Shown: positions 1 through 44,652, counted from the first letter of the stretch. The stretch: DNA of 64,000 nt from Mytilus trossulus (GCF_036588685.1 NC_086376.1:79525630-79589629); one strand, 5' to 3'. A program made the numbers and translations. The notes: generated from the letters alone by a model not told the origin.

Positions 1-323
1 TGGCATACCTCATCCCCCAAAACTTTACAAACACAAAATATACACACAAAAAAACAGTGGCTGGGGGTATCTGACCATGAGAAAAAAATATTATTATTTA
101 TGTCATTTCTTGGATTTTTAAATCAAAACTTTTGATAAAATCAGGAATAATCATATCAAAATGACAAACTTACTATTTATATTTGATATGCAGGCATGAT
201 AGATGCAAATTTTACAAAATGCAAAAAAGCAATGGTAGCATAATAACAACAAGTACAAAATTAGCCTCTTATTAAACCACTGAATCTTATTTACTATCGA
301 CTTTATCATATATATATATATAC

Positions 324-415
324 AGATATAAGAAGATGTGGTATGACTGTCAATGGACAAGTCACAATTTGTAAAAGTAAACCATTATAGGTCAAAGTAC
401 AGATTTCAACACGGA
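324..415 (-). mobile_element. 3'-end fragment of twister-bearing repeat family B
   Basis: GATATAAGAAGATGTGG...AAAAGTAAACCATTATAGGTCAAAGTAC...TTCAACACGGA is the reverse complement of the 3' end of the long copy at 21775-22608. Confidence 0.7.
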
Positions 416-2229: not shown

Positions 2230-3324
2230 TTAATTTATTTACAAACTAAATTAGTCATTGTCATAAAAATAATTTATTAATTGCTATTTATAAATTACTA
2301 TAAAGGAAATCATTCTATTTATACAAATTACTTTTGCATGCAGTTTTAAGCATGTAAATGTTTTAGCAAACCAAGATAACATTCACTTATTAATTCTAAT
2401 TACTATGATCTTGACACAGAGAAAAATCAAATTAAAACTTATGGCCATAAAAAGCAGAACTAATTGGAATATTTCTGATTCTGTGCAACCTTCTGAAACA
2501 AATATCTATTTAGATGGAATCTAGATAAACCAACCTATTTACATACATAATATGTACAATAACACCCATAATGTAGAACCTACATCTAAGTGCAGTCGTG
2601 TCATTGACTTTCAAAGCAGAACAATTTCTGCAGAATTCCATTAGACACTATTGCACACATTATACTTCCTAGATCAGAAAGATTGGACTAAAACTAACCA
2701 CATTTGGCAGATTTAATGTAAAATGACATTTGGGACAATTACAGATTATATAATTTAATCTAGAAATCAGACATGGCTTTTCTAAAATTTCAATATTCCT
2801 CAGTGTAGCCTACAGTTTGGTTTATCACATAAATAGTTATACTATTTTAATGCAGCTAAATTTTTTACAGTTTTCTTATCCACTCCCCAGTGCATTATAA
2901 CTGCCATTAATCTAAATCATCTTGTTCTAAATTTTATTTAAAAACTTAGTGTAATAAATGACGATGTTCAAGGTCCAAAATTTTCCCCATTTCCATTCTC
3001 TATTTTATTTTCCATCAAAATTTCTTAAGACATTTCCTGGAAATTTGTACTTTTCATAACTTGGTACTCCTGACCGCTATCTCTTTGTTTCTACACAACA
3101 ATACGGAAACAACGTGGTCACCATTAATCTTTCTATACCTAACTACTTCATGACTCTGGTGTTATAATAGAAATAGTAAAACGTGTGAAGCAGAAGGTGG
3201 GTGGGTCCATTCATAATGTGAAGGAAACAATCATTAATAGGAGTGTACATGATCGTACAGGTGCAGGTATGAAAAAAGTTAAGGTGTGAACTTTTACGCT
3301 GTTGATACAGAAATAAAATTATAA
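2230..3324 (-). other. Possible terminal (3'UTR) exon of the minus-strand gene
   Basis: Pyrimidine-rich acceptors TTTACATTTCCGTCTCAACAG| (exon start 3324) and TATTTCTGTATCAACAG| (3298); several AATAAA on the minus strand between about 2230 and 3010; 3' end uncertain. Confidence 0.3.
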
Positions 3325-5940: not shown

Positions 5941-8260
5941 CTGGTAAATAAGTCTTATACAAAATGTATAAACAGGTACATTTTGTACATGTGTACCCAG
6001 TATATGGTACTTTAAACTGGTTGACAAGAATACCCATACCTTTAAGTTTAAGTTTGTCCTAATGTTTACCGAGGTTAGTACATGTACATGTATTATGAAG
6101 TGAATTGTCTGGACATGTATGTACAAGTACATTATATAGCAGATAATGTTTAAAAAATCAAAAATAAATGATAACGGATTTTTTCATCACCATATACCAA
6201 GCCTGCAATAGTAATTTACCAGGCGGCAAATACATGTACAAATGTATGAATAAAAAGATTTAGGAATACTATAATTTTTAGTTAGACCCCCAGGTCAGTA
6301 CATCTAATAAAAGCAAGGAAAGATACCAAAGGGATATTCAAGTCATGTGGAGTCTTCTACAATACTGACAATTATTATTAACACTATGTTAAATTACCTC
6401 CAAGTTGACTTAAAATAGTCGAAGTGTCAAGTGCCTTCAATTCACAATTCTCCAAATAGAAATAAATACAAATTGATTTCAGATTTATAATAGTTGTACC
6501 ATGATCATTATGACCAAATTTAAATTATACTTGTAAGTTGAGTAAATCATAAGGTTCTATCATGATTTTAGTGACAATCTTTCATCAAAACATAATATAG
6601 CCTGTTTTCTATAATCACCCCAAACCAAAACAATACAGAAATACCAATGCCTAAATTCCTACATTAATTAGTTATTCAATCTTCACAGTTTAATGGCCAT
6701 ATACTATGTCGGGTGTGGCATTGCAATAACATTATTAAATTACATGTATAAGACAATACTTTATTTATGTACATTCAGGTAAGCAGTCAATGGGCGGGGT
6801 TTAATATTTTCTTACCAAATATGAATTGACTTGTTGTTTTCAATTGACCTACTTCCTGAAATTAATATCTGCATAAATTTTACTTATATGAAACTTATGC
6901 ATTGTTTAAGTATTGTTGAAGTACATTTATTTTTAGTATTTACCTAAAACGACTTGTAATAATGGAAAGGCAATTAAAGTGTGATCCATTGGTACGAAAA
7001 TATTTTTTTTTAAATTTAGTGTTTGATTCCAAAATAAAAGATAAATTGCAGCAATAAATTAAAACATATTAAAAAGATTTATTAGGTTGATTTTTATTCA
7101 GCAAACATTTGGAAAGAAATAAAAATCATCCCATGTGTGTACAGAAAAACATTTATTTTACATTATATATGCACTGGAGAGCCCTTCACTGGAGCAGAAT
7201 TCTGTTTCACATGATAAAGGTTTTGTTAGGTGTGTTTTCTCTAACTTTAACAGCCAGTCATAAAGAACTCAGATGACATTGAAAGCGACTTATCCAAGTT
7301 AGCTTAACCACACAATTATTTGAAATTAATCTATAGAAAGTCCCCATTCAGATCAGCATTGATTTTTTCATACTATTTCAATTAGTTTATTTTCTATACA
7401 GAAGTTGTTTGAATGGTTGCATAAAAAATATATATGGAAGAAAATAACACTTATAAAGCAAGAAAGAGTCAGAAAATAAAAAAAAATAGTATTTGTTGTT
7501 AAAGCCTGTTTTAAGTGTTTAAATATTAAAAGCCTTTTAAAAAATAATTTTGAACAGATTATTTTTAAATGTATTTAAATCTTAATTGAAATATGTCTGA
7601 ACTCATATCTTTTTGAAAATATTGAAAATAGTAATGGTGTTTATTTTAAAAATATATTTTTGTGTAATATGTTACAAAATTCAATTAATGGGAAATATAA
7701 AAAGTTTGTTTATACCAATTAAGCTCAAGTGCAGGTTGTATTTAACTTGATATTATTTAGGAAACAAAAGAAAATTAATAATAATAATTTCTGGAATGCA
7801 TCAAGCTATATTTCATGTCACAGTATAACAAATAATGTTCTTCCTACATAAAAATAATTGATTTCATAGTTTTTTTAAAACTTTTAAATGTTAAGAATTT
7901 AAATGGGAATATCAGTAGGTTGATTGCATTCTTTTCAAGCGTGAATGTGTTTTCAAATGTCTAGAAAGAAGGAGTTCAATTTAGATTTATTATATGAAAA
8001 TCATTATAATTTAATAATAAAAAAAATACTACAGCAAACATTCCAAGAAAGGTTTTAAATTGTTTGATAGATGTTGCAAAAAGTAATATTTTCATCAGGT
8101 TCAATACAAAAATCAATAGATATTCTATTTCCTAGACATTGACCGTGACACAGATTCTCCTGAAATATACAAATGTGTATACATACAAGAAAGACCAGAG
8201 AAAAATGAAGGCAGTGAATTGTAAACTCGTTAGAAATGAGAAATTATTTGTTTTTTTTAC

Positions 8261-11204: not shown

Positions 11205-12740
11205 AATTCGATAGTAGTGTACATAAGAGGGGTACAGACCAATCAGCTGCGAAGGAATAGGATGTAAACTCCACTGACCAGTAGTTTACATAAGAGGGAT
11301 ACAGACCAATCAGCTGTGAATGAATAGGATGTAAACTCCACTGACCAGTAGTGTACATAAGAGGGATACAGACCAATCAGCTGTGAATGCATAGGATGTA
11401 AACTCCACTGACCAGTAGTGTACATAAGAGGGATACAGACCAATCAGCTATGAATGCATATGATGTAAACTCCACTGACCAGTAGTGTACATAAGAGGGA
11501 TACAGACCAATCAGCTGTGAAGGAATAGGATGTAAACTCCACTGACCGGTAGTGTACATAAGAGGGATACAGACCAATCAGATGTGAATGAATAGGATGT
11601 AAACTCCACTGACCGGTAGTGTACATAAGAGGGGTACAGACCAATCAGCTGTGAATGCATAGGATGTAAACTCCACTGACCGGTAGTGTACATAAGAGGG
11701 ATACAGACCAATCAGCTGTGAAGGAATACGATGTAAACTCCACTGACCAGTAGTGTACATAAGAGGGATACAGACCAATCAGCTGTGAAGGAATAGGATG
11801 TAAACTCCACTGACCAGTAGTGTACATAAGAGGGATACAGACCAATCAGCTGTGAATGAATAGGATGTAAACTCCACTGACCAGTAGTGTACATAAGAGG
11901 GATACAGACCAATCAGCTGTGAATGCATAGGATGTAAACTCCACTGACCAGTAGTGTACATAAGAGGGATACAGACCAATCAGCTGTGAATGAATAGGAT
12001 GTAAACTCCACTGACCAGTAGTGTACATAAGAGGGATACAGACCAATCAGCTGTGAATGCATAGGATGTAAACTCCACTGACCAGTAGTGTACATAAGAG
12101 GGATACAGACCAATCAGCTGTGAATGCATAGGATGTAAGCCCACTGACCAGTAGTGTACGTAAGAGGGATACAGACCAATCAGCTGTGAAGGAATAGGAT
12201 GTAAACTCCACTGACCAGTAGTGTACATAAGAGGGATACAGACCAATCAGCTGTGAATGCATAGGATGTAAACTCCACTGACCAGTAGTGTACATAAGAG
12301 GGATACAGACCAATCAGCTGTGAATGCATAGGATGTAAACTCCACTGACCAGTAGTGTACATAAGAGGGATACAGACCAATCAGCTGTGAAGGAATAGGA
12401 TGTAAACTCCAGATACAGACCAATCAGCTGTGAATGAATAGGATGTAAACTCCACTGACCAGTAGTGTACATAAGAGGGATACAGACCAATCAGCTGTGA
12501 ATGAATAGGATGTTAACTCCACTGACCGGTAGTGTACATAAGAGGGATACAGACCAATCAGCTGTGAAGGAATAGGATGTAAACTCCACTGACCAGTAGT
12601 GTACATAAGAGGGATACAGACCAATCAGCTGTGAATGCATAGGATGTAAACTCCACTGACCAGTAGTGTACATAAGAGGGATACAGACCAATCAGCTGTG
12701 AAGGAATAGGATGTAAACTCCACTGACCAGTAGTGTACAC
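11205..12740 (+). repeat. 67-bp tandem satellite, about 23 highly similar units
   Basis: Unit AGTAGTGTACATAAGAGGGATACAGACCAATCAGCTGTGAATGCATAGGATGTAAACTCCACTGACC; one unit has an internal deletion near 12410; degenerate units extend to about 11040 and 12890. Confidence 0.97.
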
Positions 12741-12890
12741 AGAGGAGAAGACTGCCTTCATTCAGCTGAAAATGTATAGGATGTACTGGAGTTTGACTGC
12801 AGTGTACATAGAAAAGGAAAGGGAGTCCTTTCAACTATGAATGAATAGGATGTACTGGAGTTTGATAGTAGTGAACATAGAGGAGGGGAT

Positions 12891-13382
12891 ATAAAATTGA
12901 GAATGGAAATGGGGAATGTGTCAAAGAGACAACAACCCGACCAAATAAAAAAACAACAGCAGAAGGTCACCAACAGGTCTTCAATGTAGCGAGAAATTCC
13001 CGCACCCGGAGGCGTCCGTTAGCTGGCCCCTAAACAAATATAAACTAGTTCAGTGATAATGAACGCCATACTAATTTCCAAATTTACACAAGAAACTAAA
13101 ATTTAAATAATACAAGACTAACAAAGGCCAGAGGCTCCTGACTTGGGACAGGCGCAAAAATGTGGCGGGGTTAAACATGTTTGTGAGATCTCAACCCCCC
13201 CCTATACCTCTAACCAATGTAGAAAAGTAAAAGCATAACAATATGCACATTAAAATTCAGTTCAAAAGAAGTCTGAGTCTGATGTCAGAAGATGTAACCA
13301 AAGAAAATAAACAAAATGACAATAATACATAAATAACAACAGACTACTAGCAGTTAACTGACATGCCAGCTCCAGATTCAAT
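12891..13382 (-). mobile_element. Non-autonomous retroelement family A (about 490 bp) containing a twister ribozyme, inserted in the satellite
   Basis: Interrupts a satellite unit (GGGGAT...AGTCC); other 3' fragments in the window; no long TSD. Confidence 0.8.
13126..13215 (-). ncRNA. Twister ribozyme, type P3 (this copy lacks the conserved A of G-A-GGG)
   Basis: GGUUAGAGGU-AUA-G8-...-GUUU^AA-CCCC-GC-CACAUUUUUGCG-CCUG-UCCCAAGU-CAGG-A-GCCUCUGGCC; P2, P3 (10 bp), P4, P5 and both pseudoknots can be drawn. Confidence 0.65.
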
Positions 13383-14315
13383 AGTCCACTTAGCTGTGAA
13401 TGAATAGGGTACATTGTGAGTTTGATATTAATGAACATAGAGGAGGGGATAGAGTCCTTTCAACAGAGAATGAATTTAAGGGTGCATTGGAGATGGCAGC
13501 AGTGTACAAAGAGGAGGGTCGAGTTCATTCACCTGAGAATAAACAGGGTGCATTCGAGTTTGACAGTAGTGTAAATAGAGGAGGGGATATGCACAAATCA
13601 GCTGAGAATGAACATGCATAGTAGTTTGACAGTAGTGTAAAAAGAGGAGGGGATTGCATTAATTTAGCTGCAAAAGACTATGGTGACTATTGGAGTGTGA
13701 CAGCAGTCCTCATAAAGTAGGGGACAAAGTCAATTCAGCTGAGAATAAATAGGATTTATAGGAGTTTATTAGTAGTGAACATAGAGGAGGGGATATGATC
13801 CATTCATTTGAGAATGGAGAGGATGTAGTTGTAGTTTGACAGTAGTGTAAATAGAGGAGGGGATAGTGTTCATTTAGGTGGCAATAGCGTCCCTTTGGCT
13901 GAAAATGAATAGGGTGTATTGGAGATTGACTGTACTTACACAGAGGTAGCGATAGCATTCCTTTGGCTGAAAATGAATAGGGTGTATTGGAGATTGACTG
14001 TACTTACACAGAGGTGGGGATAGCACCCCTTTGGCTGAAAATGAATAGGGTGTATTGGAGATTGACTGTACTTTCATAGAGGTGGCGATAGCATCCCTTT
14101 GGCTGAAAATGAATAGGGTATATTGGAGATTGACTGTACTTACACAGAGGTAGCGATAGCATCCCTTTGCCTATTAATGAATAGGGTGTAATGGAGTTTG
14201 ACAGTAGTGTACACAGTAAAAGGGATAACATCCTCTCAGTTGAGAATGAATTGGTGTTGATGCTGAAAGTGTACAAATAGAAGGGGATACAGTCTATTCA
14301 GTTGAGAATGAATGA
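13383..14315 (+). repeat. Diverged continuation of the 67/68-bp satellite, with a homogenised 68-bp sub-array at about 13870-14190
   Basis: Units CTTTGGCTGAAAATGAATAGGGTGTATTGGAGATTGACTGTACTTACACAGAGG... recur at 68-bp spacing. Confidence 0.85.
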
Positions 14316-19110: not shown

Positions 19111-21774
19111 TTTATTTAAGGTCTTGATAGTACAGAACATTAGAAGACAACAAACATACCATATAAACATGTTATAAATAATCAATTGGCATATCAAAAC
19201 ATTATGTAGTTTCTAGATACTCTTCATTTCTTTCTCATTATTTATAAGCATATCACTGTGACTGACCCTTAAAGGAACAAAGCTCATCAATGTATTACAA
19301 CTCATATTTAAAATATAAATAAAATTATTAAGTAATGACATTTTTTTACCAATTTGATTGGCATCATTTGAAGACTTTTTTTATTCTTTCATGTCGTCTC
19401 GGTACTAGAACTGCTTCTGTATCATTGTCTTTCACCAAATGCAATTTCCTTTTCCTGTGCATGTAGGCGGAGAAGATAGGTTTTTCCACATCTTTTGTGT
19501 TTATTCATTTATATCTAAGCTGTATACTTATTTTAACTTGGATGCCATGAACTATAACTAAAATGAATCCATTAAGATGTAATAAAACCCAGAAGATTAT
19601 GTTTCTTTTACAGCTTGTAAACTGGACCATTAAATATGCAATTAGGAAATAAAAACATGTGTATAGATGGAGAAATAGAAAGAAATTACTGAAGCAAATT
19701 CTACAAGATCATTACATATAACCTTTTGTTAGAATTCAAGTGATGAAAATTTAAATTCACATGCAACCACATCAGTGAAAAGGAAGGTTGTATCAAATAA
19801 TAAATATCTATATCGTAATTTAACTATTATTGACAGAAGCTATTTTTGTTTGTTACATGTACTTTTCTGCATGCAAGACCATGTTTAAAATAGGATCTGT
19901 ATTAGGTAAAAAAAAAGTCTATAAATAGTTTAAGGCTTGCCTTTTGAGAATTCATTAATACTTAAAGGTGAGGAACAGATCATGGCCACAGTTTCATTCC
20001 CTTCTTTGTTAGCCAAGGATTTCAATTTAGTCCTCTTCTCTCCTTGGTTAAAGGGAACAAGATCCTTATCCTTGGCTTGCAAAGAAGGAACGTTCCATGA
20101 TAGATGTTCACTGGGATCAATAGTTTCCAGGAACACATCATGCCAAGACTTCATCAGGAACACTCTGACAAAAAAGTGCATTAAGATGCAAAAGAAAAGA
20201 CATATATGGATTATCAATTAATATCAAAAGATCACAATGTGCACATTTAATAAAAGAAGCAAGAAAACAGTCAGAAAATAAAATAGGAACATTCAGAACC
20301 AAATGCTCCGTGGGGTCACGTGTCAGGAGCCAAAAGTCAGCAAATATTCTTGGCAAAAATTTCACAGATGGCTCTTAAGTGAAGTTCCAGCCAGAACATT
20401 CTGACAACCAATGTTGGCAACAACATTAATGAGTAAAAATTCACAAAGAATAGTTAGTTCCGAGTCAAAAATTAACTGGGTCATGAGTACCTATATGAAC
20501 ACTATGAGCCAAAATTTCTCTGGAACACTGTGAGTCAAAAAGTCAACTAAGAATACTTTAAGCCAAATGTACCTTCATGACTGAATGAGCTAAAAGGTCC
20601 AGAAGGAATACTTTGTATAATGATCCAAAAGTTTAAGAGGCACACTTCCATGAAATAGCAATTGCAACTAAAACACACACATGTTAGGAATATTGTTCAA
20701 AGTCATGAAAGCCAAAATACATTGAAATTCGGTTTGGAAGCTGTCATTTGTTTACTGAGAATTGTTTCAATATATATTTTCTTAAACTGATAAACACTTC
20801 TAAATTACACTAACTCAGACAGAAATTGGGATTTTATAAACAGCCATTTTTTAACCTGTCAAATGTTCAAGACTGTACACCTGCTTTAGATTTTCATACT
20901 CAAACTGGTTACGTACAACACATGCAATAACAGTAATATTAAACTTGATTGTCAATTAATCATACAGCAATTCTAGGTTATCTTAAACTTTTATGTTTTG
21001 TAAAAAAAAAATGGTTTAAACTTTAAGTTAACTCTACTATATATATGTACTGCAAAACTAGTGATAATGAAAGCCAGAAAAACTCATCTGCTGGTAAAAC
21101 AGTAAAAAGCTCATTGAAACTGAGTTACTGTAAAAGATGGACATATGTTGACTCCTGTAGTCTTTTAGCTATTTGTGTTATTTCAACTCTGATCCATACA
21201 TGTAGACGAAGATATGTCAATGTTCTTGGAAACATTCATGTTTTTTTTAAATCACTTTTTATCAAATATAATCTAACTTGTGAATAATGATTGTTAACAC
21301 AACAATTTCTTTCATTATACAATTATGTAAGTGCTTATCTATGATTGTGTTCCAGCAATCCATCTCCTAAATTACACTCAACAAAATTTATGTAATACAT
21401 GCATTTGGCATGCATCAAACTATACAGCACACATGTATGCCTTTACTTCAAATGTAAAAGTTTGTTTGATATCTGCACAAAAATTTGATTGTTTTATCGT
21501 TTTTTCATAGACATTAAAATGTCTGAGGGATTTGTGAAGAATTACTCAAGTTGGATTTTGATATATATATACAGGTTCTGGTGTGAACTGCTCTGTTCTT
21601 TTGTGAAGTATTACAAATTGAAAACATGCTAGAATTTGAAAGACTTATTTCATGCCATTTTATCATGATTTCAACAATATAATTTGTTTAGAACTTAAAG
21701 GCTAAAAGTAAACATATAATTACAAAATATCCAAAGATATCGGACAAAGTTCTGACACATTAGAACATTAGTCT

Positions 21775-22608
21775 CTGATGCATGATTTTTTTATTATTAA
21801 TTGGTTTTGGCTTTTAACTAGCTGTCAGTAACTGCGAGTACTCTCAAATTGTATTTTCTTATTAATTCGACCTGTTGATACTGTTTATAATGCTTTTTTG
21901 TTATTTTCTATTTACATGGATCTTGTCTGTACACCAGCTTTGATTATTTGTAATATCTTCAATTTTTCACTTATTCTTACAACATTTGTATAAACTTCAA
22001 GATTATAAAAAAACGTTTTTTTTCTAAAGTGAATATTGATTGGTTAAATATTTCTCAGAGATGTCCTGTGTTTGAATTTGTTTGTTAGCTTTTTGGTCAT
22101 GAATGTTTGTCTCTAATATTTAATTAACTGTGCATTTGTATTCAGATATCACAGATCAAATTTATTCGTTCATTGTGTAATCATACGTTTTTTTATTGAG
22201 TTTTAAGTCTGCCAATTGATATTTTATCATATGTTTTTCTATGTTGTGATGTTATGCTATTGTTTCAGAAAAAGGGAGAAGGTTTGGATCCATTAAAACG
22301 TTTAATCCCGCTGCAAATGTTTGCACCTGTCCTAAGTCAGGAATCTGATGTACAGTAGTTGTCGTTTGTTTATGTAATATATACGTGTTTCTCGTTTCTC
22401 GTTTTGTTTATATAGATTAGACCGTTGGTTTTCCCGTTTGACTGGTTTTACACTAGTAATTTTGGGGCCCTTTATAGCTTGTTGTTCGGTGTGAGCCAAG
22501 GCTCCGTGTTAAAGGCCGTACTTTAACCTATAATGGTTTACTTTTTAAATTGTTATTTGGATGGAGAGTTGTCTCATTGGCACTCACACCACATCTTCCT
22601 ATATCTAT
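21775..22608 (+). mobile_element. Non-autonomous retroelement family B (about 830 bp) containing a twister ribozyme
   Basis: Longest copy of a family with at least six 5'-truncated fragments in this window sharing the 3' end GTTGTCTCATTGGCA...CACATCTTC. Confidence 0.8.
22257..22358 (+). ncRNA. Twister ribozyme, type P3, apparently intact; predicted cleavage U22303^A22304
   Basis: P3 CUAUUGU-U-UCAGA / UCUGA-UGU-ACAGUAG; P2 GGGA(22274)/UCCC(22306); conserved GA(22278); T1 AGG(22280)/CCU(22331); U^AA; T2 GC/GU; P5 UGCAAA/UUUGCA; P4 CCUG/CAGG closing loop UCCUAAGU. Confidence 0.8.
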
Positions 22609-31142: not shown

Positions 31143-31335
31143 ATAGATATAGGAAGATGTGGTGTGAGTGTCAATGAGACAACTCTCCATTCAAATAACA
31201 ATTTAAAAAAAAGTAAACCATCATAGGTCAATGTATGGCCTTCAACACGGAGCCTTGGCTCACACCGAACAACAAGCTATAAAGGACCCCAAAGTTACTA
31301 GTGTAAAACCATTCTAACAGGAAAACCAACGGTCT
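31143..31335 (-). mobile_element. Family B 3' fragment
   Basis: Close reverse complement of 22415-22608. Confidence 0.85.
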
Positions 31336-42175: not shown

Positions 42176-42561
42176 ATAAAATAATTCTGAAACAAAAGCC
42201 ATTTCTGAGGTCAATCCTAGAAGAAACTGAATCAGTAAGCATTAGGTTGTACTTGTGCTCTATCTAATAGTTTATTATGTCATTTCTTCTGCATAAAAAA
42301 AAATATAAAATTATGATATAAAGCAATTTCTAAATTTTTATTTCAATTTTGAAAATGTCAAATGCAATGAATAATATATATCTAATAAAAATTTAATTCA
42401 TCCTGAATTGTGCATGCATATCCTTTTTCCTAGTTGGATTAAAATCAATATTTTGGCTGCCCCTTCAATCAAAACATGATATACCACTGCCAGAGGTTAC
42501 AAAGGAATGTTCAGTGCTCACAGATATGTTTCACCTTGTCACATTTTCCATGATCCTCTAC
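42176..42561 (+). repeat. Left arm of a roughly 385-bp inverted duplication (partner 44264-44652)
   Basis: Reverse-complement match over its whole length with scattered substitutions and small indels. Confidence 0.95.
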
Positions 42562-42794
42562 CAAAGCAGGAACCTATAATTCAGTGTGTAAATCAGATCT
42601 GTACTCTTAAATGGTTCTAGTGATCTGTTTAATTTTGACACCTGAAACCTTAAACAGCAAAAACCATTAGATACCTTCGGCTTCAGATATTATTAGATCT
42701 GTACAGATTTTAGAGTTGACATTATTATGCACTTTTGCAAATCTAAATATTTTGACAGGATAAAGAGTTTTGTACTGCATGAAGACTGGAAGTA

Positions 42795-44263: not shown

Positions 44264-44652
44264 GTAGGGGATCATTGAAAATGTGGCAAGTTGAAACATA
44301 TTTGTGAGCACTGAACATTCCTCTGTAACCTTGGGCAGTGGTACATCATGTTTTGATTGAAGGGGCAGCCAAAATATTGATTTTAGTCCAACTAGGAAAA
44401 AGGATATGCATGCTCAATTCAGGATGAATTAAATTTTTATTGGATATATCTTATTCATTGCATTTGACATTTTCAAAATTGAACTGAAAATTTAGAAATT
44501 GCTTTATTACATAATTTTATATTTTATGCAGAAGAAATGACATAATAAACTATTAAACAGAGCACAAGTACAACCTAATGCTTAGTGTTTGAGTTTCTTC
44601 TAATAGTGACCTCAGCAATCTGACTGTGGCCTTTGTTTCAGAATTATTTTAT
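44264..44652 (-). repeat. Right arm of the inverted duplication, embedded in the satellite
   Basis: Reverse complement of 42176-42561. Confidence 0.95.

Follow-up and report, generated by a model that had tools for sequence, protein, structure and literature searches.

Two questions are raised by this locus: whether the twister-like motif at positions 22265-22348 (+ strand) is a genuine self-cleaving ribozyme, and what kind of element carries it. The window, that is the whole stretch of DNA that was analysed, comprises 64,000 nt of Mytilus trossulus sequence (GCF_036588685.1 NC_086376.1:79525630-79589629), and positions are counted from its first letter. A sequence-only reading had described a type-P3 twister within an abundant SINE-like and retrozyme-like repeat. 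The explanation that we favour, and consider rather probable, is that this is a type-P5 twister-class ribozyme motif in the 3' tail of a Naiad element, cleaving between U22303 and A22304. The motif's architecture and conservation and the identity of its host are established; the cleavage, its regulation and its role are what we infer.

The letters, their order and the key coordinates (U22303/A22304 and G22278) were re-read on the plus strand and are as the sequence-only reading gave them. The module begins with the 5' arm of P5 (UCAGA, 22265-22269), which pairs with UCUGA at 22344-22348 in the minimum free-energy (MFE) fold and whose pairs covary between families. The tract AAAA (22270-22273) separates this arm from P2' (GGGA, 22274-22277), the partner of P2 (UCCC, 22306-22309) by both letters and covariation. 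A conserved G-A follows (22278-22279), in which G22278 is the candidate general base and which in family B aligns with the GA of the Rfam Twister-P5 consensus. The T1' strand (AGG, 22280-22282) covaries with CCU at 22331-22333, the two forming pseudoknot T1, and a 20-nt linker (22283-22302) occupies the place where P1 would be. The predicted cleavage site U22303/A22304 lies in the U^AA at 22303-22305, at the position that the Rfam consensus gives it with respect to P2 and T2. Beyond P2, the G-C at 22310-22311 belongs to the predicted pseudoknot T2 and meets G22336-U22337 in the alignment rows through one G-C pair and one G.U wobble. An optional 14-nt P3 hairpin (22312-22325) is present in the MFE fold, and families B and C have different pairing hairpins in its place. 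P4 (CCUG/CAGG, 22326-22341) closes the loop UCCUAAGU, giving CCUG[UCCUAAGU]CAGG, and this loop aligns to the consensus UCC(C/U)AAG; AA and the 3' arm of P5 complete the module. The MFE fold of 22262-22351 is the P5/P2/P3/P4 four-way junction expected of a twister, with a z-score of only -1.55. The candidate general acid at A+1 (A22304) is present together with the general-base G and the A that follows it, and the scissile U^A step immediately 5' of P2 is kept in families A, B, C and G. The module at 22265-22348 is a complete twister-like motif of the self-cleaving type, for which catalysis itself is predicted.

A strict descriptor was used to compare the motif with chance expectation. Its first part demands UAA-N4-GC and a 4-bp P4 with the loop U-NNN-AAG-N, and its second an upstream P2'-G-N-T1' that is complementary to both P2 and the loop. 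The descriptor gave 40 matches in 360 kb of genome, none in the reversed sequence and zero or one in each of 20 shuffles. The motif is real, far beyond chance.

Relatives of the module were collected with a covariance model (CM R1) built from two family-A and two family-B copies, which yielded 67 matches in the window plus 75 loci and more in metagenome contigs; four human-gut metagenome loci (L097, L098, L125 and L140) were excluded from all subsequent work. Family A is represented by the copy at 22265-22348 (95.7 bits), which reads GGGA-GA-AGG ... UAA-UCCC-GC with the loop UCCUAAGU and the P5 arms UCAGA/UCUGA. Family B (L060, L047, L015 and the window at 13131-13212) reads GGGG-GA-GGG ... 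UAA-CCCC-GC and has the loop UCCCAAGU, a 9-bp P5 and a 3-bp P3. The window copy of family B, on the minus strand (92.7 bits), lacks the A of 'GA', which is kept in the intact copies L060:476-558 and L047:4263-4345. This copy (~12892-13382, - strand) is inserted within a satellite array with a 67-69 bp unit that extends over 11213-14216. Family C (L031:6323-6402) reads GGGG ... UAA-CCCC-GC with the loop UCCCAAGU and other P3 and P5 helices, and in this copy a run of eight G, without A, replaces P2'-GA-T1'. Family G (L014:2379-2463 and L204:616-697) reads AGGG-GA-GGG ... UAA-CCCU-GC, and the deviant lineage D/H has GUGA-GA-GGG and the loop UACCAAGU. Two further relatives in the window are decayed: one at 42491-42576 (+ strand, 33.9 bits) with UCA for UAA and an altered loop, and a partly deleted one at 44267-44333 (- strand, 16.5 bits).

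Some module copies lie in contigs of other provenance. The 16-mer of P4 has only chance matches in bacterial-genome contigs, except for L204, which is filed under a Bacteriovoracaceae MAG and holds two decayed module copies (616-697 and 6831-6892); it is probably invertebrate DNA binned in error. Six metagenome contigs (L095, L105, L132, L118, L111 and L106) carry a dispersed repeat with type-P1 twisters (28-48 bits with Rfam twister-P1) that have the identical P4 module, CCUG[UCCCAAGU]CAGG, and also the identical GAGGG-UUG continuation. These contigs apparently derive from another invertebrate host. Type-P1 twisters that share this P4 module on invertebrate contigs reach 40-48 bits in Rfam, which counts in favour of the twister assignment.

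The families differ by changes on both sides of their helices. Across 46 distinct alignment rows, 92.5% of the cells pair, compared with 31-42% when the partners are slid by 1-3 columns, in an alignment that was fitted to P2-P5 and so favours those helices, T1 and T2 being outside the search model. Both-sided changes occur in 17 of the 19 pairs, and not one of 500 shuffles attains the observed values. Compensatory changes between families are found in P2, P3, P4, P5 and pseudoknot T1. P2 appears as GGGA/UCCC, GGGG/CCCC and AGGG/CCCU, with 95.2% of its cells paired and double changes in all four pairs. T1 alternates between AGG/CCU and GGG/CCC by family, its pair 18-124 being A-U in 25 rows and G-C in seven. 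T2 varies little (GU in 36 rows and AU in five at one pair, CG in 34 at the other), with a wobble in all families. The independent events are few and lie at the level of families rather than copies, since family members, at 95-100% identity, contribute no covariation information. The covariation that had been read from the sister family at 13131-13212 (- strand) was confirmed for both GGGG/CCCC and GGG/CCC and extends to further families; the twister order, the conserved core and pseudoknot T1 that had been proposed are likewise supported by the letters and by this comparison, and T2 by its letters.

Rfam models searched over the whole window at gathering thresholds gave no match, a result that would suit a chance resemblance to a twister within a repeat. 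We regard such a coincidence as very improbable, since it would have to account for the excess of descriptor matches over controls, for covariation that includes T1 and for a full-length alignment of Twister-P5 to family B. In this alignment, positions 1-58 of the Rfam Twister-P5 model (RF02684) extend over L060:486-552, scoring 22.7 bits (136-nt search, E 0.0042), below the gathering score of 37.6 bits. A permissive Rfam search of 22150-22450 matched only the 3' half, to twister-P1 at 14.4 bits; searches of family A as a whole gave twister-P1 scores of 14.4-14.7 bits, and no Rfam twister model (clan CL00120) reaches its gathering score on family A or B.

Because the alignment puts the open ends between the 3' strand of P4 and P2', the permutation is of the kind that PMC5408937 defines as type P5. 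The earlier assignment to type P3 has to be replaced, as the ends open between the P4 3' strand and AAA-P2', where Rfam Twister-P5 opens. The stem names change with it, so that the arms previously called P3 are P5 and the hairpin previously called P5 is P3. Each capital of the Twister-P5 consensus is either kept, compensated by pairing or, at the last loop position (C to U), converted into a wobble (G.U) in T2. Of the imperfections in twister pseudoknots, G.U wobbles are tolerated best (PMC11662667). The canonical P1 is absent: UUUGG... after T1' and ...ACGUU before U-1 cannot pair. Loss of P1 does not abolish twister cleavage (PMC5408937; PMC11662667), and since P1 is dispensable for catalysis its absence is no argument against activity; it lowers the fit to the family more than the function.

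The linker in place of P1 contains two self-complementary tracts, Pal1 (UGGAUCCA, 22285-22292, + strand) and Pal2 (AAACGUUU, 22296-22303, + strand), the latter including U-1. In family A, Pal1 is UGGAUCCA or UGGGCCCA, and UGGUACCA occurs in ~45% of the RNA-seq reads; in this RNA variant (GGUACC) positions 22288 and 22289 change jointly. Sister families have other palindromes at this place (UGAGAUCUCA in B, AGCGCU in G and UAGCGCUA in D/H), and the cores GGAUCC, GGGCCC and GGUACC are all found within one family. The versions of Pal2 (AAACGUUU, AAACAUGUUU and AACAUGUU) each end at U-1. The palindromy of both tracts survives through paired changes (AU, GC, UA) of the adjacent central bases. A hairpin is unable to explain these changes, since it leaves adjacent central bases unconstrained, whereas an intermolecular duplex constrains them. 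A short helix, GUU(U)/(A)AAC, is able to present Pal1 in a loop, and Pal2 can fold into a 5-6 bp hairpin that hides U-1, A+1 and A+2. The palindromes suggest gating or dimerization, and Pal1 resembles a dimer-initiation site. A homodimer cofold exceeds two monomers in stability by 8-16 kcal/mol; this was not taken as evidence, as any palindrome gives such a gain.

The second question concerns the carrier. The window copy is a 5'-truncated Naiad-type copy of family A, 841 nt long (21768-22608, + strand) and composed entirely of 3' UTR, with a constant 3' end at 22608; 30 genomic copies have this common 3' end and differ in their 5' ends. It aligns to L034:3009-3599, downstream of the stop codon of a reverse transcriptase (RT) at L034:2821 and of a SECIS, and longer copies extend into an ORF with RT (YLDD). 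A SINE, as claimed in the sequence-only reading, is ruled out by this collinearity with the 3' UTR of an RT-encoding element whose longer copies reach the ORF. The twister module lies on the sense strand of the element, ~260 nt before its 3' end. The element spans ~4.4 kb from L056:520 to the 3' end, and was described from real individual copies. An alternative 5' end at L048:1501 was discarded when ~980 nt more and a pseudo-LTR were found upstream. This pseudo-LTR is a partial upstream copy, twister included, that lies directly against the 5' end in six of the 30 full-length loci. Within the KR-rich region of one copy (L058:2028-2656), the 100 nt that immediately precede L048:1501 occur as four tandem repeats spaced 180 nt apart.

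Relatives of the RT protein are numerous (4,021 within the E-value cut-off), and the best 120 of the 4,021 have no informative name; a search of viral contigs with the RT alignment gave no relative. Upstream of the RT, in another frame, there are a CxC-like motif (U-D-C..P.GH) and a KR-rich block; the element also has a DKA rather than a DKG motif (VPADKAANN). In copies that reach ~980 nt further, a GIY-YIG-like domain at L056:1002-1520 can be traced at the motif level (LIY..YVGQT, R..EH and E..FWI..GLN). Pfam finds no endonuclease domain in the pieces between UGA codons and only a weak RVT_1 match for the RT; since it recognizes neither domain convincingly, the endonuclease call rests on the motifs.

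Five in-frame TGA codons occur at cysteine positions (L056:1002-2081 and L034:379-2821): in a CX2-5CxxC finger, before GIY, at the first Cys of CCHH, in the CxC motif and eight residues after DKA. That the upstream stops mark a dead ORF was ruled out, because all stops in the N-terminal frame are TGA at Cys, apart from one frameshift in an A-run. Within an A-rich run near L034 ~1330-1380, a one-base offset separates the N-terminal frame from the RT frame in copies 99% identical to one another; either a non-autonomous subfamily that still amplifies shares a frameshift mutation, or the offset reflects recoding. SECIS_1 matches follow the stop codon, with 27.9 bits at L034:2957-3014 in family A and 27-29 bits in family B against a gathering score of 35. 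DKA and CxC are diagnostic motifs of Naiad elements, in which the Cys before GIY and the position eight residues after DKA are selenocysteine sites in all four families, and the first Cys of CCHH is selenocysteine in the clam families (PMC8557442). Three of the five TGA positions match these reported positions. Judged by these sequence features, the host is a selenoprotein-coding Penelope-like element of the Naiad clade.

Several observations concern the extreme 3' end of the element. The last ~60 nt (22548-22608) have a read depth several-fold above that of the rest. The last ~190 nt recur at 31143-31335 (- strand) and 318-415 (- strand) in copies without the twister part; this points either to a tail module that is shared or to truncated copies of very small size. 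In RNA reads, 22607 is followed, after a few extra letters, by 22578, 22576 or 22557, a duplication of the terminal 30-50 nt reminiscent of the 30-40 bp 'tail' extension of Penelope-like insertions. In a flank of locus L031 there is also a weak type I hammerhead-like match (3216-3259; 20.8 bits, E 1.2), which may belong to a different Penelope-like element.

The high copy number that had been claimed is upheld: the 24-mer starting at A22304 has 3,688 exact copies in the 1.3-Gb genome. A first genome-wide pass with CM R1 gave ~488,000 rough candidates, of which 150 were scored, all above 102 bits, and the stretch is represented in sequencing runs assigned to three organism labels. The 24-mer across the site (22290-22313) has 3,273 copies, or 89% of the count for the 24-mer starting at A+1. 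This ratio is about equal to the general 5'-truncation gradient of the depth tables, so no group of copies begins at the cleavage site, and these counts show no excess of 5' ends there in the 1.3-Gb genome. In the raw reads of one RNA-seq run, both strands are transcribed and the depth rises toward the 3' end as genomic copy number does; in this single run there is no pile-up of molecule ends near 22303/22304 and no circular joint. The depth in one read orientation dips in the bin 22278-22307 (45.9, compared with 65 and 77 in the adjacent bins), which was not counted as support. The comparison with retrozymes made in the sequence-only reading is not sustained, as this is a solitary copy with a coding parent, it carries no hammerhead and the reads give no circular joint.

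Every copy continues for 304 nt past the site, where its 3' end lies, so reverse transcription must use RNA that is uncut at this point. This, together with the lack of read ends at the site, the lack of an excess of truncated copies starting at A+1, the sub-threshold Rfam scores and palindromic tracts that look like dimer-initiation sites, would be expected if a twister-derived or twister-shaped structure were kept for a non-catalytic role such as RT recognition, dimerization or packaging, with little or no cleavage in vivo. We consider this reading unlikely, though deserving of some weight. It does not account for the retention across families of the catalytic and pseudoknot positions, including A+1 and G, which are structurally needless, and twisters that have such cores and lack P1 are generally active in vitro (PMC5408937; PMC11662667).

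An active ribozyme could also be hitch-hiking on the element as a parasite of a parasite, with no role in retrotransposition, spreading in the part that survives truncation. Craig et al. raise this idea for the hammerheads of Penelope-like elements (PMC8557442), and the motif does lie within the 3' part retained by every truncated copy. When the 3' regions of families A and B were compared with BLAST, however, only 22281-22342 aligned; the motif is therefore the single conserved island between the two 3' UTRs. Compensatory changes moreover keep it in at least four lineages. Together these observations argue for selection at the level of master elements, and make the hitch-hiker an improbable explanation.

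The reading that we prefer is that of a genuine and probably cleavage-competent twister, placed where other Penelope-like elements carry hammerheads. The RNA would fold into the twister core and cleave at U22303/A22304, producing 2',3'-cyclic phosphate and 5'-OH ends. A transcript extending from the pseudo-LTR into and through the body would contain two motifs, which would excise a unit-length RNA; the same function has been suggested for hammerheads in other Penelope-like elements. The site lies within the template from which DNA is copied, which requires that cleavage be partial or gated. For copying, the single 3' motif has to stay largely uncut; the Pal2 hairpin might ensure this, or cleavage might require a partner motif. 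A tentative and rather doubtful extension is that the twister is gated by dimerization, with the two self-complementary tracts standing in for P1. A lone 3' motif would then remain mostly uncut, leaving the template copyable, and two motifs (in tandem, in a pseudo-LTR transcript or in two RNAs) would pair before cutting. If true, this mechanism would have arisen in parallel, by convergence, with that of the dimeric minimal hammerheads in other Penelope-like elements. Hammerheads were reportedly described in these elements by Cervera and de la Pena in 2014, and their dimeric minimal variants by Lunse et al. in 2017.

Twisters are known in many eukaryotes. The type-P5 twister (RF02684; Roth et al. 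2014 via PMC5408937) has the same order, P2'-GA-T1'-[P1 region]-U^AA-P2-GC-(P3)-P4, and shares the loop UCCYAAG, the opening at P5, pseudoknot T1 and the predicted T2; family B aligns to the full model. The mussel motif differs in scoring below the gathering level, in the 20-21 nt linker with two palindromes that replaces P1, in having U instead of C as the last loop base, hence the T2 wobble, and in being eukaryotic and borne by a retroelement. A 2024 survey that focused on type-P1 permutes listed bivalves among the groups with putative twisters (PMC11662667).

The hammerheads of Penelope-like elements are likewise small motifs of the self-cleaving type that lie near the 3' end, in the pseudo-LTR and in every 5'-truncated copy (PMC8557442; PMC7761336). 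They too have self-complementary sequence at the position of the closing helix, suggesting action as dimers, although the ribozyme class differs, the mussel Naiad carrying a twister. The Naiad clade is reported to be without the canonical hammerheads of its relatives (Craig et al., PMC8557442). The clam elements Naiad_Mmer and Naiad_Scon resemble the mussel element in their N-terminal GIY-YIG, which in the mussel is a motif-level match, in CxC and DKA, in UGA codons before GIY, at the first CCHH Cys and eight residues after DKA, in the 3' UTR SECIS and in their 3.4-4.4 kb body, pseudo-LTR and 5' truncation (PMC8557442). No ribozyme is reported for them, whereas in the mussel element the twister follows the SECIS by ~200-470 nt.

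The T-variant twisters of the Schistosoma mansoni Perere-3/RTE elements similarly have a weak or absent P1 and are carried by a retrotransposon in thousands of copies (PMC8501958). They are, however, of type P1 and located at the 5' end, where cleavage defines the 5' terminus beside the target-site duplication (PMC8501958), whereas the mussel motif is of type P5, lies ~300 nt from the 3' end and is spanned by the copies. Metazoan retrozymes are also abundant ribozyme-bearing repeats in mussels and other invertebrates, but they are short non-coding tandem units with type I hammerheads and circular RNAs (PMC7229834), in contrast to a twister in the tail of a coding element. Among the papers searched that name Penelope-like elements together with twisters, Naiads with ribozymes, or twisters with retrozymes, none reports a twister within a Penelope-like element.

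Penelope-like elements are known for their hammerhead ribozymes. Naiads dominate bivalve genomes, and their missing hammerheads have been taken to mean that a ribozyme is needless for proliferation (PMC8557442). A conserved twister at the equivalent place, if true, would mean that Naiads have not lost the ribozyme requirement but satisfy it with a ribozyme of another catalytic class, through functional replacement or convergence. The copies, thousands to tens of thousands of them, would also rank among the largest populations of twisters in an animal genome, and the element lends itself to testing how a self-cleaving RNA can persist within the template that a retroelement must copy.
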